A DNA stretch of 63,217 nucleotides, the filler included, from Salisapilia sapeloensis CBS 127946 (taxonomy: Eukaryota > Protista > Oomycota): assembly GCA_023334545.1 (NCBI GenBank). It is 6 parts of 6 records of this genome, joined end to end, with 100 filler letters (N's around TTAATTAATTAA, not from the genome) between each part and the next. Parts side by side here need not be neighbours in the genome. Positions count along the whole stretch, not along the records: positions 1 to 30,442 come from JAADVB010000222.1; 5 more parts are not named here. One strand, written 5' to 3'. Every line of letters begins with the position of its first letter. Positions within the stretch are counted from its first letter, which is position 1. A program made the position numbers and the translations under genes. This document shows positions 5,087-22,499 of this stretch, piece after piece. The notes beneath the pieces are model-generated. The model saw only the letters and a program-made list of their open reading frames with translations, searched no databases and was not told the origin of the DNA.

Positions 5087-5212
5087 TACATAATACTACG
5101 ATTACGAAAACAATTTGAAAAAACATCGTTTTCTGAGTATGGAATTGTCCAATGAGATGTGATATAGCACCAATATACTACATGAGGAAGAAATATTTTA
5201 TTATCTACCGCG

Positions 5213-6426
5213 ATGGAAGAACCGCAGAATCAGCAGCGGAGTGAGACACCCTTGTTCTGGTGCCACGAATGCTCCGAATATGTTGATAGGGTCATTGACG
5301 TCGACACGCAAGAAGTGTCCTGTCGACAATGCACGAGCTGCTTTGTCGAGGAAGTCGAGTCGGTATGGAAGACAATACCACGACATGCTATTAATACCGC
5401 CCATGACTTTGGTATAACTCATGTAATGCATTACTAGGATGATCCACCGGAACAATTTTGGGAAGACAATGGTGATTCTATTGGTGCGCAGAGTGACACC
5501 CACCGGTCCGCTCGCACGGATGCACTCGGCTCAGTACGTTCTTGCGCCCATATCGTTCAAACGCAACATCTCACAGGATGCTATTCATAGTTTTATAATC
5601 ACATGATGGACGGCCGAGCTCCACAAACGGAGAACCATCGGATGCGTGCAGAAGATCGTAGCGGAGAAAGCGAAGCAAATGGACACGAGCACGGTGAGCC
5701 ACCTGCCGGCATCCAAGAGTACGTATTTATTGCTACTATGCTCTTACTTAGTCTCATGGACGAACTATAGATTCCTTCGTATGATCACACAGGAAATGGG
5801 TGGACAGACTGGACAAGGCGGTGGACGCACCACACGCCGTATGATGACTCGAAATGGCCAGCCGATCGAAGTGTACTTTAGTGAAGGTGAAGTAGGCGGA
5901 GCATCAGGCCTCTTTGGCGCTTTGAATGGCATGATGCCATCAGGTATGGCCAGCGATGCCGGAGACTACGTCTTTGGCAACTTGTCCAGTGTCATCAATC
6001 AACTCATGCAGAACGATCCCAACAGAGTACATATGAGAGTCTATATACATGTCGGTACCCATGCTAAATGCCATCAACCGCTTTTCAATAGCATGGAACA
6101 CCACCAGCTGCAGCCGACGCTATTGAAAAGCTGCCGAAAGTCGAGATTTCGCAAAGCCAAGTGGATATTGGTGCCGACTGCCCCGTATGTAAAGAGTTGT
6201 TTAGTCTAAAGGAAGAAGTGCGAGGTATGCCGTGCGAACACAACTTCCATCCCGATTGCATCCTCCCGTGGCTCAAACTAGTACGTTACTTGTTTTTATA
6301 CTTTATAGCACATCTCTAACGCTTACGTCTACACAGCACAATTCGTGTCCCGTGTGTCGATATGAACTGCCAACTGAAGATGAGGACTATGAAAGCCGCA
6401 GACGGTCGCAAACGTCGGCAGAGTAG
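5213..6426 (+). CDS. RING-H2 E3 ubiquitin ligase, RNF126/RNF115-like
   Basis: N-terminal zinc ribbon FWCHEC..CRQCTSCFVEE. Spliced C-terminal RING-H2 [39 protein letters not shown]. Confidence 0.9.
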
Positions 6427-6703
6427 ATTGGCTAATTGTTTCTCAACTCGCTCTTTACGTACTGTACGAAGGACCTACGTGTCTGCATCCGACAGCTTAT
6501 GAAGGAGCGAATGACAAGGCGCTCGGCCATTGCATCTTTTCCATGCCTTGAATTCATTTTTTGCCAAAGATAAATGCAGCTGTATCGTATATGACGATCG
6601 CAAGTTGAAACTCCTGTCTAGAAGTGACCATCAATATCAAGCGACGCCAGTAGCTTCGTTCCATTCGCCTCTCTTGTTCCTCTCTCTTGTGCTATAAACG
6701 TTC

Positions 6704-7811
6704 ATGAAATCAGCTTTTGGAAGGAAAGAAGCAGACTTGATAGAGGCCATAGGTACCTATGAGGTAGGCTCTTGCTTTGCTTGTGAAATGATTCATGGAT
6801 CGGCATATACGTATATGATTGTTTAGCTTCTTGTCGCGATTGCAAGGTCCAAGAATCCAGACTTTGACTTTATAGATGAAGATCAGGTGCAAGATGGTCT
6901 TCGAGGTACTCGTACATGTATGTACACGATATGACTATGGCTCAACGACAATATCTTGTAGAGTGTCAACTGTGTTTATGCCGGATCAAAAGGGTAGAAT
7001 TGGAGGAGATGATCCATACGAAGCGATGTAAAGGAATTTTAAAAGGAATCGATAGCGAATGTGAAGATTTGGCAAATGAAATTAAAGGAGAGCTGCATCA
7101 AGTGATTGAAGCAGCTTTCAATTGCTCTTCGGTACAATCTGTGTCGTTGGGATTGCTGCCTTACATATGACGCTCAAATGACCTAGACTTATTCTGCCAA
7201 CCGTCGAGCACAAGCACTGATGGAACTTGTGATTCTCATGCTGGTCGCCGAGGTACGTTCTCTACAGCTACGACCACCTTGGTAAGTTCACCTAACATTC
7301 CACTTAGCGAGAACAAGAGGCTCGTCATGCGTATACGGAAGCAGTTGCTATCATTCAAAGCTCGGAATCCATTGATATGGACACCCACCAGATTGTAAAT
7401 CAATTCTATTCGTCTCGCTTGACTCCTTCGAACATCTAGCCTGATATGTCTGTAGATGCACAGAGTGGATGAAAGACTGAAAGTGTCTAACAGTAACCTG
7501 GATGCTTGCATCGTTGCCAAATGTCCGTCTACCGAGCAGACCCAATGCATACAAGAAGTATACATCCGTGAGGCTGGAAGTGTAGACAAGGACCTGACCA
7601 AGTCTCAACTCAGCAATCTTATTGCCAGCTTCAACGTTCGTCCTACGCTCTCCGATGACGAGCTACATAAGATATGGACACAGGTATATCCCCACTTCAC
7701 TCGATCAAGTAGAAACCCTCTATACTCCTGTGCATGTAGATGACCAACTCAGATCCTATCGCTACCAACGTTTCGTACAGCAAGATACTCGAATGGTGTT
7801 CCTACACTTAA
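6704..7811 (+). CDS. Hypothetical multi-exon protein with degenerate EF-hand-like C-terminus
   Basis: Hand splicing from ATG 6704 (MKSAFGRKEADLIEAIGTYE) through several GT-AG introns links the short ORFs at 6916 and 7456. It ends LTKSQLSNLIASFNVRPTLSDDELHKIWTQ/MTNSDPIATNVSYSKILEWCSYT*. Confidence 0.55.
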
Positions 7812-7913
7812 AGCAATGCATGTTTACAAAAGATGCTGCTCAAGAGCGCTTTTGATTCTCCTTATCTTGTATGCCGCTACTGTTGTCCTATTAATGCATT
7901 CTTCTTTCGCTCT

Positions 7914-10050
7914 TTATGTGCACTGGGCTAGCGCTCGGTTCGCAAAGTACACCACGTCATTATCCGCATCTTGCGCGAGCGCCTGCAAACAAGGCTTCAC
8001 CTGTCCTTCCACTGCAGATGCATCAACCTTGGGCGTCACGGCCTCGAGTGTCTTGGCCACGTTAAAACGAACGTTCGGGACAGGATCCTGCTGTGCCAGA
8101 TCAACGGCAAGCGGGATCAGGTGCTCCTGAATCGTCTCTGGGTTCATGGCTTCGCACAGCACGGCAACGGCATGCAACGCCGTCAGTCGGTGCAAGTAGT
8201 TCTCATCACCTCGCATGGTCGCGATGCGTGGTAGGATGTGCGCCTTGGCCCACTCGACGCCAAATGTCTCTGTCAGTCTCTTCAAATTAACAGTCGCAGC
8301 TTCGCGAATCGAGTAGACACTGTCGTTCAGCCAGGACATGCAAAGCTCGAGCAGCTGCTCTTCAAAGTAGCTCTGTCCGAGTTGCGCTGCGAGCACAGGA
8401 ATGTATTCGATGATAGCGAGACGGACGCGCCACTGTCGGTCTTCCGCGAGTTGGCTGATGGCTGGCATCAACGATTGCGAGAGGAGTTCAATGCCGACGA
8501 CGTTATTGCCTTCCTTGAGATTCGAAATCACGTTTAGACGCACCTCGGAGTTCTGGTCATTCAATAGTTGTAGGAAAAGAGGAAGAAGGTGTTCTATCGT
8601 AAGATCTCTGCCTAGACTAGGAGCTAGCTTCATCACACCAGCCGCGAGGGCAGAGCGAACGTGATCAGACAAGTCTCTCGACAACGTCTGCAAGCACGGA
8701 ACGACGCGATCGACAACTTGTTGTGGTGGAAACAACTTGCAAAAGCCAGTTACCTGTCCGACATGCATAAGTATTGACATATAACGAGATAGGAAGAGGG
8801 AGGATGTACTTTAGACGTTGCAGCAGTACGCACTTCAGCTTCCGAGTCTTCTAGCAACGCGACAAAGCAGTCTCCGAGCGACGCGTTGATCGTATCGTTA
8901 TTAATCGCGTCACAAAGGTCTGGGAAGCGATTCGCGACGGACCATCGGACACGCCAGGAACTATCTCGAGCAGTATCGAAGAGCACGGAAAGCACTTGAG
9001 ACGTTAGCACATCTGCCGGAATCTGTTTCACGAGTGCAACGGCGTTATCGACCGTATGGATACGAACAGAGTCTTGCTGGTCTTTGGCGAGAGATAAGAA
9101 AAGCGGAAGCATCTCATTCGTCGCGACTTCTCCCGACATCTTTCGCATCGTATGAGAAACGTTCACGAGATTGATACAAGATACAAGGACGTACCGTAGC
9201 GACAAAGACGCCAAAGGCACTAGAAGCAGCCTTACGGACCATCGGTGTATCGTCACGACATAGCTGCGTAAAGAGCTGACGAAGCTCCGTCTGGAGCTCT
9301 GTCGAGAGAGAAGCATAGCCGATGTGGAAGAGGTTGCAGGACGCGATGCGAGATGTGAACCTGTCGACAGAAAACTTAGCATAGTAGACAAGCATACAGT
9401 CTACAGGGCAGCATACCAATCGCGCGTGACGAGACGTCGGAGTGTCGGGACAAAGTGCTGGGCGATGCTGTCTGCGTCCATGGACTCGACCACTTTGCAG
9501 ATAGAACTCACAGCCTACATTTACATTAGCGTATGGTACTGATAAAACGTGATAGAGGGGGTACCATGTCTCGGACGGACGCTTCATCGACAGTAGCGAG
9601 AGACTCGAGTGGTCGTAGAAGCTGGTGGGCGTTAGCTGGACCACCAACGACATCTACAAATCCTCCGAGCTCTTCTGCCATAGCTAGTAGGACTTCATCC
9701 TCATCATCCAAAGAGTCTACGACATGCACATTTAATCCCATTCTCGAACGAGTACGAAGAGGACGAACCATTGAGGAATGGCAAAAGCTCTGATTGTGTT
9801 CGCTCCGGTCCAAGTACTGAGGCTATCAAGGATGATTAATACACATGAGTTTGCCTATCACCTACGAGTCTACTACCGATGATGTGGATTTTTTTAATCG
9901 AATTCAATCGGAGTTGGACGTCCTCATGCTTGAGTTCGTCCACTAGAATCGCGACAGGATACATGCTCTCATCTATATATCCACACCAACATTATTGCCC
10001 AAGCCGTATATAGTATATGGTTCATCTGCACCTGTCGTCGCGGTAGCCAT
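7914..10050 (-). CDS. PPP2R1A: Protein phosphatase 2A scaffold subunit A (PR65, HEAT repeats)
   Basis: Spliced N-terminus [36 protein letters not shown] repeats, [24 protein letters not shown] and D.DVVYFA end. Confidence 0.97.
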
Positions 10051-10628
10051 GATATCTTTCTATCTTTAGGAAGAAGGGAGACGCAAGTGGATAGTCTATC
10101 CAGTCAAGCACCGCCACAATAAGCATATCAACACCACCTGCGATTAATAAAGCCATAGATGTACGTACGTGTATGCTCAGTCGATCGGTAGCAAGCGTTT
10201 TCGAATAACTGCAGTCGATACTCGTCGAGCCACTTCGTTGGTCGCGAGGGGAATTTAGATGTGTGACTACGAAGTCAGTCACAAATGATGCTTAGGACGG
10301 AAGAAAGTCGTCGGAAAAGTCCAGCGATGACGCGAGTACTAAAGGGCAAACGACTGCTTGGAACGTACACTAGTAGGAAACGGCAGAAGGATAGGCTAGT
10401 TGACGAGAGCCGTTATCATTTACGACCTCCAGTTCTTCCCGGACATGTGCCCTTTTTCGTACATGGCATGTGTCCCAAAAGCAAATGCACGAGATGTGTA
10501 TAGGTTGAATCGAGCTATATAGTTCTGCTATCCTACATGCAAAAATGCAAAAGTAGTCGTAAAGTTTAATCGTCCTGGCTGGAGTCAAGTCGGATGGTAC
10601 GTCCATGCACCCTTGTCTCACTAGAAGA

Positions 10629-12572
10629 CTAGCTGCCCAATCGACTTCGACGTCTCTCGAGCTGCAATTGCTCAATATGACCAGAAGTCACGCCTTGCGA
10701 GACCATTCGAATGGTGCAGTATAAGACACTTGCCCACTCCAGTCGCTCTTCCTGTGAGCTAGCCTGGAGCACCAACTTATCTGTCGGTGATCGAGCTACA
10801 ACGATGCACTGGTCTCGATTCGGCACTTCCAATAAGTTCACGTAGCATCCATACAGCGAAAACGACTTGAGATGCTTGAGTTTATCCTGTCCAGCTTCTT
10901 TATAATAGTGGATCTGCCCGTGCTCAATGACAACGACACGTCGTTTCCAATTCTCAAGTCCCGATCGAGACTTTTTCACTAGCACACCCTTCTTATACGG
11001 CGGCAATAGGAACTCTAGTTGCAATGGGAACTCGGCACCCTTGAGCAACGCTCGAGCATCCATACAAGGCATCCTCAGAATACTCTGGCCGGCGATGCTG
11101 ATGACCTGGCTGCCTGGAACGATACCTGTAAGTGACTTTCCCTCCGGTTCCCTCGAACTAGTAACCACGAGTGCTTCCGTCCGTCTCTCCAGCGTCAATC
11201 GAATCTCCTCTGGCTTCTGGTACACGACCGAGATGCGAGCGAGTGGAAGCTCCTCTGCTTGACGCACGACGAGGTGGAGTCCAGGCACAGTCTTCTGCGT
11301 ACTCGACCACCCGAGCGCAGTCTGGGCTTCTTGTAACGCTTCGATCCATCGACGCATATCGTCTTCACTAAACGCCGTCAAGTGCATTTCAAATTTTCCG
11401 TCCTTGGACGTCACGACAAAGTAGTTCTTACGTCCATCAGCCGTCTGGGCCATCCCAGGCGTCACGACAGATTCTTTCAACGGCATCGAGCCTTTCAATT
11501 CCTTCGCATCTGGCGTATAGTACCTCAGCTCTCCCTTCTCGACACGGAAAAATCGTGTCTTCCAGCTTTTATTCACATGTCCTCGCTTCCGTAGACATCC
11601 TTCCATGTGAATGTACGAAGTCGGATCATCGTACCGACGCCATTCATGCGGAACATCCAGGTCCTGGACGTAGAACTTGACTGTCTTGCGCAGGGGATCC
11701 CATGGAGCAGCCGGTGCGACACCTACTTGCTGTAGCTTTTTAATCCATTCGTCTCGAGCTTCGAGTGTCGGAGCTTGGACCATGGTCTTCCGTTGCCACG
11801 TGCCGATCATGAACAAGTTCTTCCGGTCCATCGTATCGTTCTGGATAGAGATTGTAGCTCGTGCGTCTAATCCGACATTCATCGAGCCCTTTAGCTTGGT
11901 CAGCTCCGCGTCGACAAAGTAGGACAAGACGCCATCGTCACGTAGCACAAAGTATCGCCAGTACCACGTCTTCACTCGTTGACCACACTTTTGCAACCAA
12001 CCTTGCATGACGACACCCATAGCTCCAGGATTAACTGTTTCAATGGCAGTACCGGCGGGAATCTCTTCGTCCATGACAGTTGGATCGTCCTCTGGATTAC
12101 CATCCTTTGGGTCCTGTAGACTCGGACCGAGAACACTCATCCATGAAAAACGAGCATTGTCCGTAGAATTCGAGCTTTCGATCGGTTCATCCACGTCTAT
12201 ATCTATGTCTATGTCTCGTGGAGTAGATGCGTTATTCATGCCTCGCGGCTCACTCGCAGTGTCTGAGCTCGACGTCGGTCGCGATGGCATATTCGAAGAT
12301 TCTAGTGCACGTACTTCCGTCGGATTGAGCCCAAAGACCGGGTTGCTAGGACTTAAGCAGCTCTGATAAAGCTCTGTGCTGCTTTGCGTTAAACTGGATC
12401 GATTACCGTCGATCTCTCGTCGCTGACGCACTGCGTCGTCCCGGTTCTGATTCGCAATGATAAACGTTGGGTCCGCCGTTGTGTGGCGACGATCAATCTG
12501 CACTTCGTCGCGGTTTTGTTCTTCAGCTGGAGCAAATTCCCGTGTGAAGAAGCGCTTGAACGCAAAGCCCAT
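10629..12572 (-). CDS. Triple-PH-domain protein with PDZ-like domain (single exon, 647 aa)
   Basis: Three PH signatures (QGWLQKCGQRVKTWYWRYFVL; EGCLRKRGHVNKSWKTRFF; KKGVLVKKSRSGLENWKRR), each closed by a W-containing helix. A PDZ-like segment (IVPGSQVISIAGQSI..LQLEF) lies between PH2 and PH3. Confidence 0.85.
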   Translation of the reverse strand: MGFAFKRFFTREFAPAEEQNRDEVQIDRRHTTADPTFIIANQNRDDAVRQRREIDGNRSSLTQSSTELYQSCLSPSNPVFGLNPTEVRALESSNMPSRPTSSSDTASEPRGMNNASTPRDIDIDIDVDEPIESSNSTDNARFSWMSVLGPSLQDPKDGNPEDDPTVMDEEIPAGTAIETVNPGAMGVVMQGWLQKCGQRVKTWYWRYFVLRDDGVLSYFVDAELTKLKGSMNVGLDARATISIQNDTMDRKNLFMIGTWQRKTMVQAPTLEARDEWIKKLQQVGVAPAAPWDPLRKTVKFYVQDLDVPHEWRRYDDPTSYIHMEGCLRKRGHVNKSWKTRFFRVEKGELRYYTPDAKELKGSMPLKESVVTPGMAQTADGRKNYFVVTSKDGKFEMHLTAFSEDDMRRWIEALQEAQTALGWSSTQKTVPGLHLVVRQAEELPLARISVVYQKPEEIRLTLERRTEALVVTSSREPEGKSLTGIVPGSQVISIAGQSILRMPCMDARALLKGAEFPLQLEFLLPPYKKGVLVKKSRSGLENWKRRVVVIEHGQIHYYKEAGQDKLKHLKSFSLYGCYVNLLEVPNRDQCIVVARSPTDKLVLQASSQEERLEWASVLYCTIRMVSQGVTSGHIEQLQLERRRSRLGS

Positions 12573-12939
12573 GGCGTCGTCGCTCGGACCGGTACTCGCA
12601 GTAATGCTCTCGATCGATTGCCACTTTTTCTACGCGATAATAGACATGGGCCACTTGCACCTGCTCTCCGTGTCGATACGTACGGACTTTACTGACGTGC
12701 TGGCTTTCGTTCTCACAAATTAATACTACCATAAACTTTTCTTTTCTTATGCTGTATACTGAAAGCAAGTCTACATACTAACGCCACCGACCATTATCTT
12801 CAAAGAAAAGAAAATGAGTAGCGATATGCAGATACTCGTGTCTCACCTCCCATGAAAAGGATATGCAGATACAACACCATGTCGTTACAAAGTAAAGTAG
12901 ATATTGCAAGTAGAGTAAAAATCAAAAAAGTTAGCTGTA

Positions 12940-15900
12940 TCACTGGAACAGCTCGGCCGGGTACAGTGGCGGTTCCAAGTTCTCTTCCGCTAAGAACTTG
13001 AGTGGGAAGTAGACGACGTGTCCTCGAATATTGCTCAGCTCCTCCTGCTTCTCCGAGATCTTCTCATTATCGCGCAAGTGGTGCATCATGGCGTTGTTCA
13101 GCGAATCCATCTTCTGCGTCATCGACGGGCGTTTTTCGCCGCCCTTATTCTTCCCACGACGCTCTTCCTGCGGTACACCCTTCATCTCACTATTCTCCGT
13201 CAACACTTCACCTCCTTCAATCGGTTCACTCGCAGCCGGGTGGCGCCCAACCTCTTCTGTCGGGCCTCCAAACCCATCTTCCTGGCGTGCGTTACCAGTA
13301 ACTTGGCCACTTCCTTGCTGCGGCTCCTCGGCATTGTCCGCAATCTCCGTGTGCTTGACCTCATTCTCCGGATCCACTTCCGTCGCGATCTGGTCAAAGC
13401 TTAAAACGCGATCGGACGGGAGACAAGCAAAGACCGACTCGTAGATCTGACAATTTGACATCGCATGATCCTGCAACGACAGCCACGTCTCCTTATCCAC
13501 TGGATCCGTGTACTTTTGATACAAGTCCGTGCCAGGGTCGACGCCAAAGTGTTCCGCAAACAGACGCATACGGAACGAATGGGCAAACTTACCCACCTGC
13601 GCTTTTCCATCGGCAATACGTGCATCCGCCATCTCATGATCATCCACCACGACTGCAATCTCCGAGTCGCGATCACCATTCTGAGAACGCTCATTGATAT
13701 TTGCTGACCCGATGATCACGTGCTGATCGTCGACGATCATGAGCTTACTGTGGATGTAAATCTCCTCCGTCTCGGGCTTATCATTCCGAACCGTGTAGTT
13801 ACGTAGACCGAAGAAGGCAATGTACTCGAACGGATCGACATCTAGCTCCTTGAACAACGTCGCGTAGATCGAGTTCTCTCCTCGACAGATACTACGATAC
13901 TGCCAGTACATGACACCACGCAGACTCGCGGCGTCACTATCCTCCGGTTCGCCTGGGAACGCAGGCATGAGCGGCATCATGACCATGACACGGAACTGCT
14001 CGTCATTCGCTGCTGCCCTCTTAATACGCTCCACAAGAGCGTTTGCAATACGGTTCGACACGCCGTTATCTCCTTCCAGTCCAGAGATAAAGAACTGGTT
14101 CTCAATGTAGACAAAGTGTTTCGCGGAGCCGATGAGACGGATGTATGCGTTTTGGATACTGTGCTCCGTCGACGTACCTGCACTCCACCACGTGACACTA
14201 CGTAGGATTTGCGTCGACACAGCCACACCGCGCTTCTTCTTCAACGCCTCGTCTTCGACACTGTAGTCCTCCGTCTCACCATCGTGATTTGCACTCGCGC
14301 CGCGCATCGGCTGTGGCTTGCGCTTAAAGACGTTGGCGACCTTGCCCCACTTGCTCTTTTTGCCATTATTCTCCTCCGTCTTCTCCTCTCCTCCATTCTG
14401 CGTCTGCTCTTTCTGGAGACGAGCATGCAAGTCGGCATGAGACACCTCCGATCGGTCCTTGGACGCATTCTTGGAGCCTTGGAAGCCCTGGATGACACGA
14501 GCTGCGCGCATGGCATTCTGCAGACGGTTGTTCAGCATATCCTGTGGGTTACGACTTGGGTCTCGCGTGCGTTCATAGTCCTTGCGCGGCACCAAGTGGT
14601 GCTGACTCTCCGTCTTCTTGCGCGTCGACACACTGTAGTTCCATCGCTGGATAAAGTGGCGAGCAACGTCTCGCGCCGGCTGGCCTTCTAGACGACAGTG
14701 GACGTCATGCCACGGCATCCGCGGCACCGTCTCTCGATCAATCATGTCCTTCTCTGGCTGATTCAGCTCGATAAAGTCCTTGACACGTGGATTCGAGTAG
14801 TCTTTCCCGACAAACACCTTGTCGTCGCCAGGTTCATCAAACAGCGCGTGCTTTCCAGTATCCCAACGACCGAAACAAATGTCCAGACCACCAACGAAAC
14901 CAATCTTCTGGTCACACACGACAATCTTTTCATGATGCGAGTACATTCCGAGGTTCTTGACGATAAAGTCCGGGTCACGAAGTACATGGACGTTCGGATG
15001 TAGACGCTGGAGAACCATCTTGGAAAAATAAGAGTTGAGCGTCAAGGCCATCGCAATCTCCTTGTACATAAGCACGTATACTTGCACTCCTTCCTCTGCT
15101 TTCTTCTGCAAGAGCTGGTCGAGACGAGATTCCGGGTATTTCTCCGGTGGACGCTTCAGGTAGATCGTCGGACAGACCCACCAACCAGCGATAAACACTT
15201 CCTTCTTCGCCGCAGAGATCTCGTCGTAGATAGCTTCGTACGTGCCACTGCCGTCGGCAAACCAACGCGCGTACGAAGGTACTTCCGTCGGGTTACGAGT
15301 GATCGAGTACGAGTCGTCGCGATGGGATTGGACCCACGCAGACTTGGAAGACGCATCGCGAATGGCATTGGCCCACTTGACAATCGCTTGCTTCGTCTTG
15401 GCTTCGAGCTGCATGACGTATGTCGCGTTCGAGAGCACGAGCATCGACTTGGAGCCTACCTCCTTCATACCTCGCTTCACTTCCAAGCTGTTGTCAAAGA
15501 GCATCACTTCCATCGGCTCCGTATCGGCAATCGAATCGTACACGGCGATACTAGAAAATTTGAGCGCCACCCACCTCGTACGCTTCGGCTTCAAGTGCAC
15601 ACGCTTGACAACACATGTGCAGTTGAAGCACTCATTATCACAGCTGACGGCACCTCGGTTCACTTGGACATTCTCCTTGTTACCCTTGAGCCACGATCGG
15701 ACCTTCATCCATCCTTCACGAATTGACGTGACACCGTCCTCGTCGTCAAACGTACTGTTGCTCACTTGGAACAACGAGACAACGTACGAAGACGAGAGCA
15801 GACCAGGCATCTGGACGACCTTTTCCAAGTAGCTTTGGACGAGCATGACCATCTCGGAAGACGTCGATGCGTCGGCACTTGCGAGGAAAAACTTGCGCAT

Positions 15901-16497
15901 ACCAGGCAGGTCATCGTCCGACGTAATGGCATAGTCCGACGAATGTGCGTGGTGCAGCATTTGCCTCGCATTCGACTTGCCATGACGAATCTTGTACCGA
16001 CTCTTGATGTAAAACCACAGTCCATACAGCGCAGACTTGGAGATCTCGACTTTCCACTTGTAGCTGCGATACGAGACCTAGTACACATGTGGATAAGTAT
16101 CTCTGGTATAAATAGGAGTGCATGTGTATGCGCATACCTCGACGTCGTATTCGACGTAACGTGTAGGCCAAGCCTCTTCGGACCGGGCGTCGACCACTCG
16201 TAAGTGCGGGGGCTCCTCAAACAAGTTCATGTCTCCATCTTCATCTTGATGGAAGTTGCTTCTCGGCCCGTCAATATTCTCTACTTCCCTTCGGACATTC
16301 CGTGCCGACTCGCGTTGCGCGAATTCTGAGTTATAGTTATTCGGCGATGACATGGCGGAGCCGTCGTCGGACATGGCACGATAGTGGTGGTCAGTATCTC
16401 CATTCGCATTCGAATTTTGCGCCGTGTTAGGTGCAGGCGGTGGCTGCGTTTGCCCCGAGGCGTCTCCAGACGGACTTGACGACGAACCGTTCGGCAT
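12940..16497 (-). CDS. PLD: Phospholipase D, PX-PH class (one intron about 16078-16137)
   Basis: Two intact HKD motifs (HHEKIVVCD and IHSKLMIVDD), IGSANINERS, PRMPWHDVH, IYIENQFF-like motif, N-terminal PX and PH regions. ORFs 16078-16497 and 12940-15960 are joined. Confidence 0.96.
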
Positions 16498-16844
16498 CGA
16501 AGAAGCGAATTACGAAATGATCGAAATATTTTATCGCCCAATTTTCCATGTGTCGTCTCATGCAATTTTTGAAGTTAATGGTTGACGATAGTGTCGAAGG
16601 AATTCGAAGAAATATTGAAAGATGAGCTAAGGTAAGAGATGGATGATGTAGACGACTTGCACGTATATTCAACGAGCCATTGCGTTCAAAACTCAGTACA
16701 AGTACCCAGCTCCATTTGACGATGTGACACGACCGATGTCGAATGAACGCGACGCTTCAGGGTGGTGTCTCCACCGAAATCACGACCTTCGAGCAACCTG
16801 AAACGGACAAGAAAAGAAAAGAAGAACGGAATAAGAAAATAATC

Positions 16845-19204
16845 ATGGCCGGCGACGAACCGAGGTTAAGAGGGATCTTTGCCGTCGAGGATGAAGAGAC
16901 ACCAGAGTGGAAGCATGCGATTGAGTCCGAAGGACAAGGGAGTGTCCCCAAGTTCGCCACCAAGGCAGAGTGTGAAGAGTTTATCCAGAAGAATTGCTGG
17001 CGAGGATCGAATCCAGACTTTCCCAACCTCCAGCACATCTTCTCTATGCTCGTAGATGAACAACAGGTCGCTTATCTAGACACTTTTATATCATCATGAC
17101 AAGACCTTAGGAGAAAAGTATAGATTGAAGAGATCCTTATGCCAAAGATTCAAGAGTATAATGAGCGATATCCGCCACAACGACCAAAGGACATTGATCC
17201 GAACAATCGATTCGTCAGTGGAGAAGGCAAAGGTGTCTGTGAAGGTCTAGACTTTCGCCTCAACCTTCCTTTCCACAAAGAGGTACACTCGACAAGATTC
17301 CAATCGTCATACGCTTCTCCTACCTTACGCTCTACACAAACTAGATGACGCCAGAGTCCACTTACAATACGCTTAAGTACCTCTTCCATCACATGCGATG
17401 TGGTATTTACGTCATGATCCGTCAGAAACGTGTCGTTCTCTTCGTACCGTTTGCCAATCGAGATTACGAGAACAATTGGGGGCAAAACATTCGCTTCGAC
17501 TCGGCTGATGGACGGATGGATACGTACTATCGAGAGAAACGAAACTATTATCGTCGAGAAAACATTATTGACGACCCACAAAAGTGGTGGGCGAATGGGA
17601 ACATCATCTGTAATGAGCACTGTCGATACCGAAACAAGGAGCATGAGACGCAGTATTGGGGCGACCAGTTCCTCACACAGCTCAAGGACATGCTCGAGGA
17701 CGCTTGCAAGCATCGTGACATTCCAGACTGTGAGTTTTTTATCAACAAGCGTGACTACCCGCAGCTCAAGAACAATCGGACGGAACCCTACGGCTTCCTC
17801 TTCGACAAAGACGACAAGAACCCAGACGAGGACATTCCTCTCCAGCGACACTTGTACGACACTTATGCGCCTATCATGAGCTTCTACGTCAGTAAACGGT
17901 ACGTCGCCCTCGTTCCACCTATCCATACGTCTCTCACATCTGTCCGTAGCTTTGCAGACGTGCCCTTCCCGTGCTCAGAAGACTGGGAAGCTGCCACCGG
18001 TCTTGTCTTCCCTCAGTCCTTCCGCCATACGCACTGCGACGCGTGCCCTTGCAACAACCCTCGCAAGTGTGAGAACGACTGGAAATGCTTTTGCCAACTG
18101 CGTCCGAATCAGCGCAAGCGCCATGGGATCGAAGAAGCTCGCGACTTGTTCACTGCGACGAACTTCCAGAAGTTCGCTAAGCCGTGGGAAGAGAAAGTGG
18201 ACACGGCGTTCTTCCGAGGTAGCGCAACTGGTGGTGGGACGACGATCGAGACGAATCAACGACTGCACTTGGCTCAGTTGTCGAATATCTGGAAGCACGA
18301 TCAGAATTATAATGGACAAGGATCTGACGATCATGAAGGCGTCCCGTTCTTGAATGCAGAAGTGACGACGTGGAATCTACGTGATAAGAAACTCGCCGAG
18401 ACACCGATGACGTTCGTGCGGACGGAAAAGTTCATGTTCACTGCTGGTCGACAGCATTTTATTCCTATCTACCAACAGTCTTCTTTCAAGTACATTCTGT
18501 ACGTCGAAGGTCATTGTGCTGCGAATCGATATGCTTTTCTCATGCGTCTCGGAAGTGTCATCTTGAAAGTCGAATCGAGGTGCGTCGCGGATGAAATGTG
18601 GTACTTCCCACTCCTTCAACCGTTCGAGGATCATGTACCGATTAAAAGCGACTTGTCCGACCTCGCGGAAAAGATCCAGTGGTGCCGAGACAATGACGAC
18701 AAGTGCCGACAGATCGCACAACGTGCGAATGACCTGTACGAACAGTTCGTGTCGAGAGATGCGATTCGAGACTACATGGAACTCATTTGCCATGGCGTCG
18801 CCCAGCGCTTCCGTCCGGCACCGGAGTGGTATACGCGTCCGAAGAAGCTCCGGACGGACGATCAACCGCACTTCCCGGAAGTCGCGTCCGGATGCAGGTG
18901 TCGTCGTTGCGACGAGACTAAGGACGACGATCGACAGAAGAAGTTGTCCGGAGAGCTAAACTCCGGTAGAAGAGGACGTGGTCCAGACAGGAGTGAGCCT
19001 CGTCGCGGCGTAAAGCGAGACCGATCGAGACCTCGTCCGGCCCGTCGCAGTCGATCTCCCGACCGCAGACGCCAACGCAGTCGATCTCCAGATCGTAAGC
19101 GTCGTCGTAGCAGGTCTCGCGATCGTGGACGTGATCGAGACCAAGGAAAGGAATGGTGTCGTCGTTGCCGTCGATCCAAAGCGGCTTGTAGCTGTCATCA
19201 TTAG
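16845..19204 (+). CDS. Glycosyltransferase family 90 (CAP10-type) protein with C-terminal RS-rich and Cys-rich tail
   Basis: GT90 motifs: WEEKVDTAFFRGSATG, FKYILYVEGHCAANRYAFLMRLGSVILKV, WYFPLLQPFEDHVPIKSDLSDLAEKIQWCRDND.KCRQIA. Three exons spliced from ATG 16845. The tail contains RSRSPDRRRQRSRSPDRKRRRSRSRDR. Confidence 0.85.
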
Positions 19205-19308
19205 GTAGATGCAAATCCATGAAGATGCTGACTGATTGATGCAAATCTTGTCTTGATACCGTTGCGTTTAGTATTTATAGCTCTTCATTCTAATCAAAGT
19301 GGCTCAAG

Positions 19309-19614
19309 ATGGAACCACAGGATGTACCGAAGTCTGTCCAGAGCAAAGGACGAGACTCGAAACCTAAAGTCCAGCGACAGCTCCATGCCAAGCTAGTAGA
19401 ATCTAGGATGTTGCAAGTGCTAGAGCGTCAGTTACAGCAAGAGAGTGGAGATACTTCGAATCAGTTGGAGCATGAAGAAGAGCTAGTGAATGACTCGCAG
19501 ATGATTGCTATTGAACAACCACAGGAAGGAGAGGGTGGACAGCATAAAACTGGATGTGGTGTCGTTCGTATGGTCCGATCACTGCATCGAGACCAACAGA
19601 ATGTCGCCAAGTAA
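19309..19614 (+). CDS. Possible small hydrophilic hypothetical protein (101 aa)
   Basis: Open ATG ORF filling the 465-bp gap between the GT90 and Vps36 stops; Q/E-rich; no recognisable motif. Confidence 0.3.
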   Translation: MEPQDVPKSVQSKGRDSKPKVQRQLHAKLVESRMLQVLERQLQQESGDTSNQLEHEEELVNDSQMIAIEQPQEGEGGQHKTGCGVVRMVRSLHRDQQNVAK

Positions 19615-19668: not shown

Positions 19669-21039
19669 TCATGAGACACTAAAGTCTACGAACTTGTTCA
19701 CATAAAAGTTCATCCCTTCAAACGTATCGTCTCGACATAATTGCTCCATCTTCTCCGCAACCTACTCCATGTCTTGTCAGCTCTGCATCATACAACTATC
19801 CACAAGATAAGTCTACCTTGAGGTACTCCCATGCTAATGGGAAGGACACATGCAGCTCCGTGGACACATCCGTCGCCGTAATATACCCTCCAGAAGACGC
19901 CTGCGCCATCTTGGCCAGTCGTTCCGCCACTCGATCCTCCCGATGTGAATCTACCCATCGTAGAAACCGCTCATTATTATCGTTTATGCAATATGTACGG
20001 ATGTGTCCTACCTGATTGGAGCACTGTCGGTCCACCTTCAAACTTTCGGAGGTGATAGCCAAGCTGCAGTGTCTTTTGCATCATACAAGCTCGGTACAAG
20101 TCATCTGGAGACACGAGCTCTACACCTCTAGCTCGATTGAATATGCAGTAAATGTCCGACAAGGTCATGATACCACCATGCTTGGGCATATGGGGCTCGA
20201 GAAACTCTGCTAATTGTCGTGCTAACTGATCAAAGTACGCGTTTCCAGCATTCTTCCGCGTGACGGGACTCGTGATACCCATATCCAACATCAACGAGTT
20301 CAACTGCTTCGTATCTTCCGATTCCGAGCGTTTGAATCCACCTTCCGTCGTCTTTTCATTCGACGTTTTCTGCGTATCGACATACCGTTCAATCAATCCG
20401 ACCACATCTTTCGCTTTTTCCATCAGGTTCGACAAGTCTGTAAACGCCGTGGCGGCGAGATCCTTGGACTCTTGCTGTGCCAACTTCTGTCGTTCCAAAA
20501 TCCCTTTGATTCCAGCATCCGACGGATCAAATCCGCGTTTCACCTCTCGTTTATCTGCAAATGAGCTCTTCTGAACATCCTTCCACGCCCGTCGTTCTAG
20601 CGTCGTTAACAATCGACCATGGAAGTCGTCATGGCCTCGATCTTTGAACGACAGTTTGAGGAATACACCTTCACCGGTGGATGTTTTCAAGTCCAGACGT
20701 AGTTTGGGCGATCGAGAGAGAAAACCAGGCTCCTTTGTCACTTTCCTCACGGTGTCCAGAGGTAAGAAGAGCGCAATGTGCGAATCATCCTTCTCTTCGA
20801 TGTAGAATAACCGGTGGGTGGTGATCGAGCATCGACCGCGTTTGTACTCAGTCTTGTCAGTGTGATCATACAGACTGATCCCGAACTCAGTGTACACTTC
20901 TACTTCTCCCTTACGCAGTGCTGGTCGTCCAACGGACGTCAATGGAAGAGCTACAAGGTACTCGTGAGCACAAGTACGAGTTTATATCGAATACACGAGG
21001 AGGCATACGTTGGAGCAAGTCGAGTGCTTTGGGGTGCAT
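19669..21039 (-). CDS. VPS36: ESCRT-II subunit Vps36/EAP45 (GLUE domain plus winged helices)
   Basis: GLUE-like N-terminus, GIKGI, AFTDLSNLMEKAKDVV, DMGITSPVT, YFDQLARQLAEF, GGIMTLSDIYCIFNRARGVELVSPDD, and spliced end LCRDDTFEGMNFYVNKF. The start may be the in-frame upstream ATG at 21117. Confidence 0.95.
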
Positions 21040-21224
21040 TGAAGAAGTATTATTGTCGTCTACTTTTCGAACACGAGCCTTCATAGACGACGATGCTGGT
21101 GCGTGATGAGACTCCATGGCGTGCACTCGTGCGACCGAACGAGGCCTTAATGGAAGAATGTAATATCGGAAGAGAGTTCACATACAAATCTCAAGTTTAA
21201 TAAATCTTGAACCGTCGGATGACG

Positions 21225-22499
21225 ATGCAGCTAACTCAGCTCTTCCTCCGCTACTACCCTCCGACGATACGGCTGCAGTATGTGACACGGGATGAGGTAG
21301 TCCGCTTCAAGAACATAAGCCTATATCACGTATCATCCGACTCCAACGCACGCACTGTATCCAAGTCGTTGATCGCACAGGAACGACTGCTTCATGAAGG
21401 TCTCGTGGATACTGTATCTCGCGTCGTCCAGCGTCTTATTGACGAGCATCAGCGAGGATTGAGTGCTACTGCCACTCCTTTCCAGCACCATACCACCCAT
21501 CGACCACACATAAGTCCTATTACGAACTTTGCATGCCATAAAACCGGTCGGATCGTGGCGACGAGCAGCTATGACAAAACCATCAAGATCATCCATCCGT
21601 TCGACAAGAAATCCAGTCCAGTTACTTTATCCGGTCATTCAGACGTTGTGTACAGCATTGATTTTCATACTTCTCCATCGCCTCGGGTACTCTCAGGTTC
21701 ATTCGATCGAACATGTCGTCTATGGGACGTCCAGAGCAAATCTTGTCTCGCCACGTACTCTGGTCATGACGCTGAAATAGTTGCAACGAAATTTGATTCC
21801 TCCGGCCAGCACTTTGGTAGCTGTTCTATGGACTATACATCTCGAGTATGGGATGCATTGACTGAAACTTGCATTGGCACATTGGAAGGCCACGAAGCTG
21901 AAGTCTCCTGTCTCGCTTTCCATCCTGACGACAGCCATATCGTTGCCACCGGCAGCTGTGATGCAACTGTAAGGCTCTGGGATACCCGCTATGATTCCTC
22001 TTGCTTTCGCGTCCTGGACGAACATGATAATGACATCGTGACGGTCGAATTCGATCCAATAGCCCAGCTCATCGCATCCGCTGGTGCTGATGGGTACTGC
22101 CGACTATGGGACGTTCGAACTGGCAAATGTCTCTTTTGTCTTGATGACCACACGGGCGAAATCTCTGACGCCAAAATGAACGGCACAGGAGCTCTCATCG
22201 CTACTTGTGGCGACGACGGATGTGCCTATGTGTACGATACGCTCACAGGCACACGTCGTCATCGGCTCTACAGCCACGATGGCAACGTCACGAGCATTCG
22301 ATTCAATCCTCAGGGCAACTTACTCCTGGGAACAGGTAGCGATGGCACTAGTCGAGTATGGAACGTCTTCACCGGAGACCTCATCGAGACCTTGTGCGGA
22401 CATGAAGCAGAAGTCTATGCCGGAACCTTTACGTACGATAGTACGAGCGTGTTAACTGCTTCTAAAGATAATTCGATACGAGTATACTCGAAAGCATGA
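21225..22499 (+). CDS. DAW1: Dynein assembly factor with WD repeats 1 (ODA16/WDR69)-like
   Basis: N-terminal LFLRYYPPTIRLQY matches the ODA16-type LLRYYPPGI.LEY motif, followed by about 8 WD40 repeats (GH..WD). Single exon. Confidence 0.8.
   Translation: MQLTQLFLRYYPPTIRLQYVTRDEVVRFKNISLYHVSSDSNARTVSKSLIAQERLLHEGLVDTVSRVVQRLIDEHQRGLSATATPFQHHTTHRPHISPITNFACHKTGRIVATSSYDKTIKIIHPFDKKSSPVTLSGHSDVVYSIDFHTSPSPRVLSGSFDRTCRLWDVQSKSCLATYSGHDAEIVATKFDSSGQHFGSCSMDYTSRVWDALTETCIGTLEGHEAEVSCLAFHPDDSHIVATGSCDATVRLWDTRYDSSCFRVLDEHDNDIVTVEFDPIAQLIASAGADGYCRLWDVRTGKCLFCLDDHTGEISDAKMNGTGALIATCGDDGCAYVYDTLTGTRRHRLYSHDGNVTSIRFNPQGNLLLGTGSDGTSRVWNVFTGDLIETLCGHEAEVYAGTFTYDSTSVLTASKDNSIRVYSKA

Follow-up and report, generated by a model that had tools for sequence, protein, structure and literature searches.

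The window, that is, the whole stretch of 63,217 nucleotides of Salisapilia sapeloensis CBS 127946 DNA that was analysed, carried a gene of four exons on the plus strand at positions 16845–19204, and its spliced mRNA encoded a product of 729 aa. The start codon was the ATG at 16845 and the stop codon was the TAG at 19202–19204; the protein opened with MAGDEPRLRGIF. The preliminary description had placed the gene at 16845–19204; the frame between these ends was not continuous. The three introns were excised exactly in transcript contigs from the runs X1, X3, and X4, and the removal of intron 3 was also seen in X5 (related organism B). The gene was organized as follows.

16785..19247, plus strand: transcript extent (5' UTR from about 16785, 3' end at about 19233–19247); contigs of 2235–2295 nt from X1, X3, and X4, with 0 differences
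16845..17066, plus strand: coding part of exon 1, 74 aa, acidic N-terminus and start of a family-specific N-terminal extension; contigs
17067..17123, plus strand: intron 1, 57 nt, GT..AG, with an in-frame TGA at 17097–17099 inside; contigs
17124..17282, plus strand: exon 2, 53 aa; contigs and orthologue match
17283..17344, plus strand: intron 2, 62 nt, GT..AG; contigs
17345..17898, plus strand: exon 3, encoding the first of the two Rossmann-like halves of the GT-B fold; contigs, alignment, and orthologue structure match
17899..17949, plus strand: intron 3, 51 nt, GT..AG, in-frame, no stop codon; contigs
17950..19204, plus strand: exon 4 including the stop, with the second Rossmann-like half, Cys motifs, and tail; contigs, Pfam, alignment, and model

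Since intron 3 was in frame and stop-free, the raw ORF 17345–19204 read through it as 17 extra residues. The search queries were the raw ORF 17345–19201 (reading through intron 3), separate exons, or full-length orthologues. An antisense ORF at 17150–17926 was dismissed as noise.

The contigs of X1, X3, and X4 were unbroken from 17949 to 19233–19247, and the C-terminal tail was kept in frame in the mature mRNA; the RNA-seq check that had been proposed for the tail was thus borne out. The 5' ends of the contigs lay at 16785–16834, and up to there the contigs were colinear with the genome. An upstream exon, named at the outset as a finding that would refute the description, was looked for: in the spliced contigs of X1, X3, and X4, which reach 16785–16834 and are no proof of the true 5' end, no upstream joint was seen, and no ATG was present between 16785 and 16845.

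Catalytic domain and N-terminus

Pfam analysis placed the protein in Glyco_transf_90 (PF05686) at 77.3 bits, where the cutoff is 24 (E 1.4e-21); a weak match to DUF7718 (E 0.018) was dismissed as noise. The matches in a PDB profile search were POGLUT2, POGLUT1, and Rumi. The fold comparison used the AF2 model of a 67%-identical orthologue (pLDDT 80.9), not the joined protein of the window, and gave Z scores of 26.3 with POGLUT2 and 23.1 with POGLUT1 (307/356 residues aligned), 21.3 with Rumi, and about 12 with other GT-B enzymes. Foldseek matched the orthologue model to POGLUT/Rumi with E 7e-16 to 1e-13, and in the window's own exon-4 model the C-terminal half was folded. The GT-B fold was shared with the animal protein O-glucosyltransferases POGLUT1/Rumi and POGLUT2/3 (Z 23–26, 307–326 residues aligned).

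In POGLUT1, Asp133 is the catalytic base, and Arg218 and Arg279 bind phosphate (PMC5543122). HMMER alignment to 5l0r and the family alignment showed that the catalytic Asp and both phosphate-binding Arg were conserved, in the motifs below.

17744..17764, plus strand: NKRDYPQ motif, with Asp at the position of POGLUT1 Asp133 (catalytic base); alignment with NVRD133YPQ
18026..18094, plus strand: His/Cys-rich insertion (H-x-H-C-x2-C-x-C...C...C-x-C), oomycete-specific; alignment columns 99–125
18206..18265, plus strand: FFRGSATGGG...NQR motif, with the NQR Arg aligned to the region of POGLUT1 Arg218 (phosphate binding)
18500..18571, plus strand: EGHCAANRY... motif, with Arg at the position of POGLUT1 Arg279; HCAA aligned to the sugar-binding turn 274–276

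The AANR of the window's protein paired with ASFR279 of POGLUT1. Each of the three catalytic positions was kept, as was the sugar-binding turn, in the window's protein and in 7/7 inspected stramenopile orthologues; in the 51-sequence alignment, two of the positions were nearly invariant and the third was invariant. The His/Cys-rich insertion was missing from diatom and brown-alga orthologues.

The PF05686 match, the fold, and the intact catalytic residues support the first assignment of the gene to GT90, and its product is apparently an active, POGLUT-like enzyme of the GT-B type. With the fold, the catalytic Asp in N-x-R-D-Y-P-Q, the two phosphate-binding Arg, and the sugar-binding turn in common with POGLUT1, it is probably an inverting UDP-sugar transferase, and its acceptor is possibly a protein Ser. 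Compared with POGLUT, however, the identity was about 20%, and the window's protein had no signal peptide, KDEL end, or filamin-like domain; its own additions were about 100 aa of extra N-terminal sequence, insertions, Cys motifs, and a disordered tail rich in charge. For an enzyme of the nucleus or cytoplasm, EGF repeats would be improbable as acceptors. PF05686 was also common to the window's protein and fungal CAP10/Cxt1 (Cryptococcus capsule xylosyltransferase, GT90), a likeness known at the family level only. The fungal CAP10/Cxt1 enzymes act on glycans within the secretory pathway.

By hydropathy, the window's protein had nothing resembling a TM or signal segment; its N-terminus was acidic, and its highest Kyte-Doolittle 19-residue mean was 1.14. 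No KDEL-type end was present in this protein or in 51 orthologues. The same N-terminal motif was common to 51/51 aligned orthologues, some of which were complete transcriptome ORFs. A simple hydropathy screen, on which the absence of a leader in orthologues rests, showed no hydrophobic leader in the median orthologue and two outliers. For the window's protein, the claim that signal peptide and TM segment are lacking was thus confirmed by hydropathy.

The preliminary description had also stated that characterised GT90 enzymes are luminal, which to our knowledge is true of all the eukaryotic ones (secretory pathway; PMC5543122). With this precedent, and with a true 5' end that contigs do not prove, the protein could be an ordinary ER/Golgi GT90 whose signal peptide or anchor was overlooked together with the upstream exon or start codon that supplies it. 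Such an explanation is extremely unlikely: the contigs are colinear with the genome to 16785 and have no upstream-exon joint, an in-frame ATG upstream at 16743 would add a hydrophilic peptide only, and the N-terminal motif is the same in the 51 aligned orthologues. Moreover, neither the window's protein nor the median orthologue has a hydrophobic segment, KDEL is absent, and relatives are fused to cytoplasmic or nuclear enzymes (see below). Outside the eukaryotes, by contrast, there is a bacterial apiosyltransferase that is cytoplasmic and bears a weak similarity to Pfam GT90 (PMC6193724).

The C-terminal tail

The basic tail of RS/RD dipeptides and the Cys cluster on each side of it were found where they had first been placed.

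18890..18910, plus strand: first Cys motif, C-x-C-x2-C; C...C-x2-C is found here in nearly all family members
18911..19153, plus strand: disordered charged linker, 81 aa; pLDDT <50
18968..19153, plus strand: linker core, 44% Arg, with RS/RD/RG dipeptides and basic NLS-like runs
19157..19195, plus strand: C-terminal Cys motif, C-x2-C-x6-C-x-C; columns 610–626, model pLDDT about 73

The 62-aa core contained 27 R, 7 D, 2 E, and 8 S, and the net charge of the tail was about +28. RS/SR dipeptides in the core numbered 13 against 6.9 expected from same-composition shuffles (P ~0.002), so the RS pattern exceeds mere arginine richness. About 18 residues (29%) of the core lay within RS runs, and the tail contained two RSRSPDR units. 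Tandem Repeats Finder detected no DNA-level tandem repeat under the tail, which is therefore not a simple microsatellite expansion. The pLDDT of the tail was below 50 in the window's exon-4 model, and the orthologue model was alike.

The C-terminal Cys motif was kept in nearly all aligned oomycete orthologues and was absent from ochrophytes. Arginine-rich tails were present in peronosporalean, Pythium, and Lagenidium orthologues, most of which had PKRxR just before the last Cys motif; the window's protein lacked it. The RS character was not conserved across orthologues: the tails of other oomycetes were rich in RD/RG and those of diatoms and brown algae in K/E, and the question of whether orthologues keep the RS tail was thus answered in the negative. 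In an organism of 95–99% similarity, 7 of the 14 listed tail differences altered the protein, and several R and S were replaced.

SR proteins, in the nomenclature of Manley and Krainer, carry one or two N-terminal RRMs, and their RS domain spans 50 aa or more and has an RS content above 40%. Pfam found no RRM in the window's protein (only GT90 and the weak DUF7718 match), and its RS content of about 29% was under 40%. The tail did have the sequence features of an arginine-rich mixed-charge domain (R-MCD), being disordered and Arg-dominated with interspersed D/E/S. It resembles the R-MCD/RS domains of U1-70K, SR, and SR-related proteins as a disordered Arg-rich stretch of RS/RD/RG dipeptides; it differs from RS domains in having no RRM, an RS content below the SR-protein threshold, Cys motifs on both sides, and a lineage-dependent composition. 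The tail is a disordered, arginine-rich linker of mixed charge that evolves fast and lies between two Cys motifs. Poorly conserved in sequence, it could be functionally neutral. In human cells, domains of the R-MCD kind direct proteins to speckles or the nucleolus (10.1101/771592; PMC9324279).

If the tail were a true RS domain of the SR type and a substrate of SRPK/CLK, it would take the enzyme into nuclear speckles, with splicing factors as the glycosylation targets. The excess of RS/SR dipeptides and the two RSRSPDR units fit this explanation, and the Tgs1-like fusions described below point to snRNA/snoRNA caps, near splicing. It is nevertheless improbable, given that an RRM is absent, that RS runs make up about 29% of the core, that RD/RG or K/E take the place of RS in orthologues, and that several R and S are replaced even at 95–99% similarity; in addition, a net charge of about +28 would favour the nucleolus over speckles by PMC9324279. 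Of the original RS-domain claim, the RS/SR enrichment beyond composition stood, but a conserved SR-type domain did not.

Relatives and their fusion partners

Identity to the window's protein was 62–74% in oomycetes, about 50% in diatoms and brown algae, and 24–31% in giant viruses. The subfamily comprised 1247 clusters at E<=1e-30, and the database name of the orthologues was "CAP10 domain-containing". Literature searches on GT90 in oomycetes, diatoms, or the nucleocytoplasm, and on RPB2-glycosyltransferase fusions and Nucleocytoviricota, found no work on the subfamily. The subfamily is large, uncharacterised, and deeply conserved, its oomycete and diatom members being about 50% identical.

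At least 13 clusters (P0131 and 12 others) combined a Tgs1-like cap N2-methyltransferase (PF09445) and this GT90 subfamily in one polypeptide. These fusions scored 140–783 bits to the GT90 family profile, with methyltransferase identity down to 33%, and a quick tree grouped the Tgs1-like fusion with stramenopile orthologues. P0181, known from a single 4.3-kb contig, consisted of GT90, a CCCH finger, and a CMTR1-like cap 2'-O-methyltransferase (PDB 4n48, E 3.5e-40). The FtsJ fusion was detected by Pfam, having been missed by an FtsJ SAM-motif regex. In the giant-virus loci L009, L010, and L011, RPB2 was joined to an RNMT-like cap N7-methyltransferase, a GT90 relative, and KH, and GT7 was additionally present in L009 and its duplicate L003; the giant viral ORFs overran the locus ends and were read by translation with longer flanks.

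The eukaryotic fusions kept the catalytic residues. The RPB2-fused viral copies had lost the catalytic Asp and Arg, so the domain there may only bind something. As the fold can evidently serve non-catalytically in these copies, the window's protein might also be a catalytically dead scaffold or binding protein (pseudo-glycosyltransferase). That is very improbable, because the three catalytic positions and the sugar-binding turn are kept in the window's protein and in seven stramenopile orthologues, with two positions nearly invariant and the third invariant among the 51 aligned sequences.

Protein kinases, or GT7 by itself, were the fusion partners of many other relatives, and one relative carried an fn2 domain of extracellular type, so an RNA link is not uniform across the subfamily. 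GT7 (beta-4-galactosyltransferase-like) was a frequent further fusion partner, which suggests the addition of a second sugar. Fusion partners are a sign of association, not of substrate. Tgs1, RNMT, and CMTR1 are represented among the partners of close relatives, whereas the window's protein has no methyltransferase domain and is linked to the cap only via fusions in other organisms.

Candidate roles of the enzyme

The product is predicted, with modest confidence, to be a soluble UDP-sugar-dependent inverting transferase of the GT90 fold that works in the nucleus or cytoplasm rather than in the secretory lumen. The relatives, fused independently to three different cap methyltransferases and to KH, CCCH, and RPB2, make an RNA-linked role in the nucleus or cytoplasm plausible. 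The original proposal of a nucleocytoplasmic enzyme thus remains plausible and gains independent support from these fusions, but the tail that was to place it there is not a conserved SR-type domain. With its basic runs, the tail may bring about import into the nucleus, have an affinity for RNA or RNP condensates, or both, and the two Cys motifs may together make up a zinc-binding module that the linker interrupts. The substrate would be tied to RNA 5'-cap formation or RNP biogenesis, and could be a protein of the machinery or the RNA itself, as suggested by the Tgs1-like, CMTR1-like, and RPB2/N7-methyltransferase/KH partners of relatives in the same subfamily.

Nucleocytoplasmic glycosyltransferases include OGT and SPINDLY (GT41) and the protist Skp1 pathway (GT60, GT2/GT74, GT77, GT32, GT8), which occurs in oomycetes and diatoms. 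These enzymes, which add sugars to proteins of the nucleus or cytoplasm, are soluble and without a signal peptide, as the window's protein is predicted to be, but their CAZy families are unrelated to it; we know of none that belongs to GT90 or is fused to RNA-cap enzymes. A GT90 lineage without secretion signals contrasts with the secretory-pathway role of the eukaryotic GT90 enzymes studied. Should it be active within the cell, the few known families of nucleocytoplasmic glycosyltransferases would gain another, and a sugar modification connected with RNA caps or the capping machinery could come to light. The gene is of applied interest, since oomycete pathogens have it and animals have no close counterpart of the subfamily.

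A different intracellular role would be that of a cytosolic carbohydrate or small-molecule transferase of stramenopiles, for example in storage beta-glucan priming or branching or in metabolite glycosylation, with the tail as incidental low-complexity sequence. Oomycetes, diatoms, and brown algae, across which identity is about 50%, have laminarin-type storage glucans in common, and GT90 includes glycan-elongating enzymes such as Cxt1. The bacterial apiosyltransferase with weak Pfam GT90 similarity, the frequent GT7 partners, which suit glycan building, and the fast evolution of the tail are also in keeping with such a role. We regard it as a minority possibility, as it explains neither why relatives have repeatedly been fused to three different cap methyltransferases and to KH, CCCH, and RPB2 nor why basic tails and Cys motifs persist across the family.

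The fusions of relatives, seen at the level of sequence, hint at an undescribed RNA-linked intracellular glycosylation step. In its most specific form, the RNA-linked reading would make the subfamily the catalytic core of an undescribed glycosylation coupled to 5'-cap formation or to snRNA/snoRNA cap hypermethylation, a proposal that is tentative and rather unlikely to hold as worded. GT90, often with GT7, would put one or more sugars on the cap, on the nucleotides next to it, or on a protein that belongs to the machinery of capping or transcription. The free-standing oomycete enzyme would reach its RNP substrate via the arginine-rich tail and the Cys (zinc) module, which would stand in for the methyltransferase fusion.

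As a separate observation on the relatives, a UTP5-like WD40 gene neighboured one of the Tgs1-like fusions.

Gene structure and surroundings

The raw ORF list contained three same-strand pieces within 16743-19204, and one four-exon gene was agreed by the DNA, the orthologue comparison and the transcript contigs. The preliminary description had reported a gene at 16845-19204; this observation was confirmed, but its exon structure had to be corrected to four exons and three introns.

Exons of the GT90 gene, each supported by DNA, orthologues and transcript contigs
16845-17066, + strand, exon 1
17124-17282, + strand, exon 2
17345-17898, + strand, exon 3
17950-19204, + strand, exon 4, with the stop codon TAG at 19202-19204

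The introns were 57, 62 and 51 nt long with GT..AG borders in all, and were precisely skipped by contigs of 2235-2295 nt that were identical to the window (transcript runs X1, X3 and X4, from one study). On the 5' side, the contigs were colinear with the genome to 16785-16834; they showed no upstream exon over this reach, which does not fix the true 5' end, and no ATG was found in 16785-16845. The predicted product was 729 aa. From 17949 the contigs were continuous to 19233-19247 with no further joint, so the arginine-rich tail is in the mature mRNA and in frame, a point that the preliminary description had wished to see checked. Intron 3 (17899-17949, 51 nt) is in frame and stop-free, and the raw ORF 17345-19204 therefore reads through it. 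The contigs showed its spliced form only; if retained, it would add 17 residues in the loop preceding the FADVPFP motif. The raw ORF, individual exons or full-length orthologues were used as queries.

The neighbours, closely packed, were typical eukaryotic housekeeping genes and gave no clue to the function of the GT90 gene.

Neighbouring genes
10629-12572, - strand, protein with three PH domains
12940-15960, - strand, phospholipase D with two HKD motifs
19977-20942, - strand, Vps36/EAP45 of ESCRT-II
21207-22499, + strand, seven-blade WD40 protein

Separate short contigs (X1 record 2 and X3 record 4; window 19283-19400) started about 40-50 nt past the end of the GT90 transcript. They overlapped a small ORF (19309-19614, 101 aa) without a Pfam match and suggest that another expressed gene lies close downstream.

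Catalytic domain and cellular compartment

The protein matched Pfam Glyco_transf_90 with 77 bits (cutoff 24), and the family profile built from 51 aligned orthologues matched the solved structures of the animal protein O-glucosyltransferases POGLUT2, POGLUT1 and Rumi. The AlphaFold2 model of the Lagenidium orthologue, 67% identical to the window protein (mean pLDDT 80.9, pTM 0.78), superposed on POGLUT2 with Z 26.3 and on POGLUT1 with Z 23.1 (307 of 356 residues aligned, model residues 99-599), compared with Z of about 12 at most for other GT-B enzymes. Unlike POGLUT1, the subfamily has a specific extension of the first ~100 residues, with no counterpart there.

In the POGLUT1 structure, Asp133 is the catalytic base, Arg218 and Arg279 are phosphate ligands, and residues 274-276 form the sugar-binding turn (PMC5543122). 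Alignment placed NKRDYPQ (17744-17764) on NVRD133YPQ of POGLUT1 and the arginine of EGHCAANRY (within 18500-18571) on Arg279, with an NQR motif (within 18206-18265) at the place of Arg218. Among the 51 sequences, the Asp and the Arg279 equivalent were nearly invariant (at least 90%) and the NQR arginine was invariant. Because all three positions are kept, the window protein looks catalytically competent, and a dead enzyme is very unlikely.

Absence of a signal peptide or transmembrane segment, as originally noted, was upheld: the highest 19-residue Kyte-Doolittle mean in any exon was 1.14, the N-terminus was acidic, and a KDEL-like ending was absent here and in all 51 orthologues. Were translation to begin at the in-frame ATG further upstream (16743), the protein would gain no more than a hydrophilic peptide. 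A conserved motif near the N-terminus was common to the 51 orthologues, some of which were transcriptome ORFs marked complete. Orthologue leaders, assessed by hydropathy and by reading twelve sequences, had a low median hydropathy, with the maxima of 1.85 (19 residues) and 2.71 (N-terminal 10-residue window) coming from outliers. The enzyme is almost certainly non-luminal, and a missed signal peptide is extremely unlikely.

Arginine-rich tail and cysteine motifs

Tail elements, all on the + strand
18890-18910, C-x-C-x2-C motif after the catalytic domain
18911-19153, charged linker of 81 residues
19154-19156, Trp between the linker and the last Cys motif
19157-19195, C-x2-C-x6-C-x-C motif, the last tail element

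The 62-residue linker core contained 27 Arg, 8 Ser and 7 Asp, and its 13 RS/SR dipeptides compare with 6.9 in shuffled sequences (P ~0.002); the tail region held no DNA tandem repeat. In the exon 4 model, pLDDT was below 50 in the linker and ~73 in the final Cys motif, and this pattern was repeated in the orthologue model. The first Cys motif was nearly universal in the family; among the aligned oomycete orthologues nearly all had the last one (Phytophthora record P0006 has a different end), and ochrophytes lacked it. From their CxxC patterns, we infer that the two motifs form one putative zinc-binding module split by the linker.

Tails of peronosporalean, Pythium and Lagenidium orthologues were Arg-rich, with RD, RG and some RS, and those of Saprolegniales were far less so, Saprolegnia and Thraustotheca showing runs of RG; diatom and brown-alga tails were K/E-rich. 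The window tail had the highest RS dipeptide count of all compared and lacked the PKRxR motif that precedes the last Cys motif in most peronosporalean, Pythium and Lagenidium orthologues. Related organism B (run X5, 95-99% similar; present in runs from other studies, dated 2025) was compared with the window over 16846-19245. Among the 40 of 62 differences listed, the catalytic body had 21 synonymous and 2 replacement changes, and the tail had 7 of each, the replacements including R to N, S to N, R to K and R to H. Given the lineage variation and these replacements, the tail is constrained in composition and not in sequence.

The tail had been described as an SR-protein-like RS domain. It is basic and RS-enriched, but it falls outside the definition of an SR protein, as no RRM was present and RS runs made up only ~29% of the core; nor was its RS character conserved among the orthologues. 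It fits the arginine-rich mixed-charge class and is a lineage-specific linker of this kind inside the Cys module. In human cells, arginine-rich mixed-charge domains lead to speckle or nucleolar localisation (10.1101/771592; PMC9324279).

Family distribution, domain fusions and proposed role

A word-index search found 669 relatives, with 62-74% identity in oomycetes and ~50% across 80-90% of the length in diatoms and Ectocarpus. At E<=1e-3 the exhaustive profile search reached 8525 cluster representatives, of which 1247 passed E<=1e-30. A quick midpoint-rooted tree placed exon 4 within the oomycete clade beside Lagenidium (84% identity in the catalytic part). At 90% identity, the protein database had no entry from the window's own species, and a literature search found no paper on this subfamily.

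Protein P0131 (966 aa) joined a Tgs1-like RNA cap guanine-N2 methyltransferase (PF09445, E 2.5e-15; trimethylguanosine synthase the best and sole PDB match, E 1e-9) to this GT90 subfamily (677 bits to the family profile) in one unbroken ORF. The gene was on 10 contigs, those displayed coming from four different metagenome assemblies; they were compact and eukaryotic, with adjoining UTP5-like, RNase H2 and zf-DNL genes. Searching with its methyltransferase part gave 12 further clusters of the same architecture (methyltransferase identity down to 33%, profile scores 140-783 bits), and the three catalytic motifs were found in all complete fusions where the search patterns matched. P0181 (858 aa), known from a single 4.3-kb contig, contained GT90, a CCCH zinc finger and a methyltransferase whose best solved relative was the cap-specific 2'-O-methyltransferase CMTR1 (4n48, E 3.5e-40). 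A GT7 (beta-4-galactosyltransferase-like) domain was the sole partner in loci L001 and L002 and proteins P0125, P0136 and P0216; P0298 (727 aa) carried GT7 with a Tgs1-like PF09445 domain, so this partner is also tied to a cap methyltransferase. An fn2 domain was a partner once. In a large GT90 group of ~1050-1140 aa, 7 of the 44 members scanned had a protein kinase domain, and no inspected member had a signal-peptide-like N-terminus; P0208, P0225, P0231 and similar metagenomic proteins had GT90 N-terminal, followed in some by the kinase.

Three divergent giant-virus genomes (MAGs) each encoded a single ORF with an RPB2 fusion.

RPB2-fusion ORFs of giant viruses
L009 (= L008), 5144-14983, ~3280 aa
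L010, 5105-14911, ~3280 aa
L011, 5030-13504, at least 2825 aa, cut by the contig end

Pfam domain maps, which cover L009 (and its duplicate L003) and L011, showed a complete N-terminal RPB2, a GT90 relative and KH domains in both. L011 had an mRNA cap guanine-N7 methyltransferase after RPB2 (PF03291, E 3e-25; RNMT structures, E 8e-15), and the equivalent stretch of L003 gave a weak match below Pfam's cutoff (E 0.0085). L009 also had GT7 and Asn/Asp-rich repeats; Pfam found no GT7 in the cut ORF of L011. Over the GT90 region, L010 and L009 shared 67% identity, and their open frames were of equal size. These viral copies had other residues in place of the catalytic Asp and of the Arg279 equivalent, so their GT90 domain is probably non-catalytic. 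An RNA polymerase subunit with glycosyltransferase-like modules appears to be undescribed.

Domain fusion is an established guide to functional linkage. Cap-modifying methyltransferases of three different types, RNA-binding domains of two kinds and one RNA polymerase subunit all occur as partners, which is good evidence for a functional link of the subfamily to RNA 5'-end formation, whatever the acceptor may be. The interpretation first proposed is partly right: an RNA-linked role has gained independent support, the tail is not a conserved RS domain of SR type, and speckles and splicing factors become one possible destination among several. The mechanism that we consider most likely, with moderate confidence, is that of a soluble inverting UDP-sugar transferase directed to RNA or RNP: the basic tail and Cys module would bring the enzyme to nuclear RNA or RNP, and the acceptor would belong to the capping or snRNP/snoRNP machinery or be the RNA itself. 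The main rival is cytosolic synthesis of a glycan or metabolite, for which the tail would be incidental; it is rather unlikely.

A stand-alone Tgs1-like methyltransferase, 35% identical to the fused type, was present in Pythium insidiosum (P0286, 546 aa) and is a candidate for partnering the free-standing GT90 enzyme as a protein of its own.
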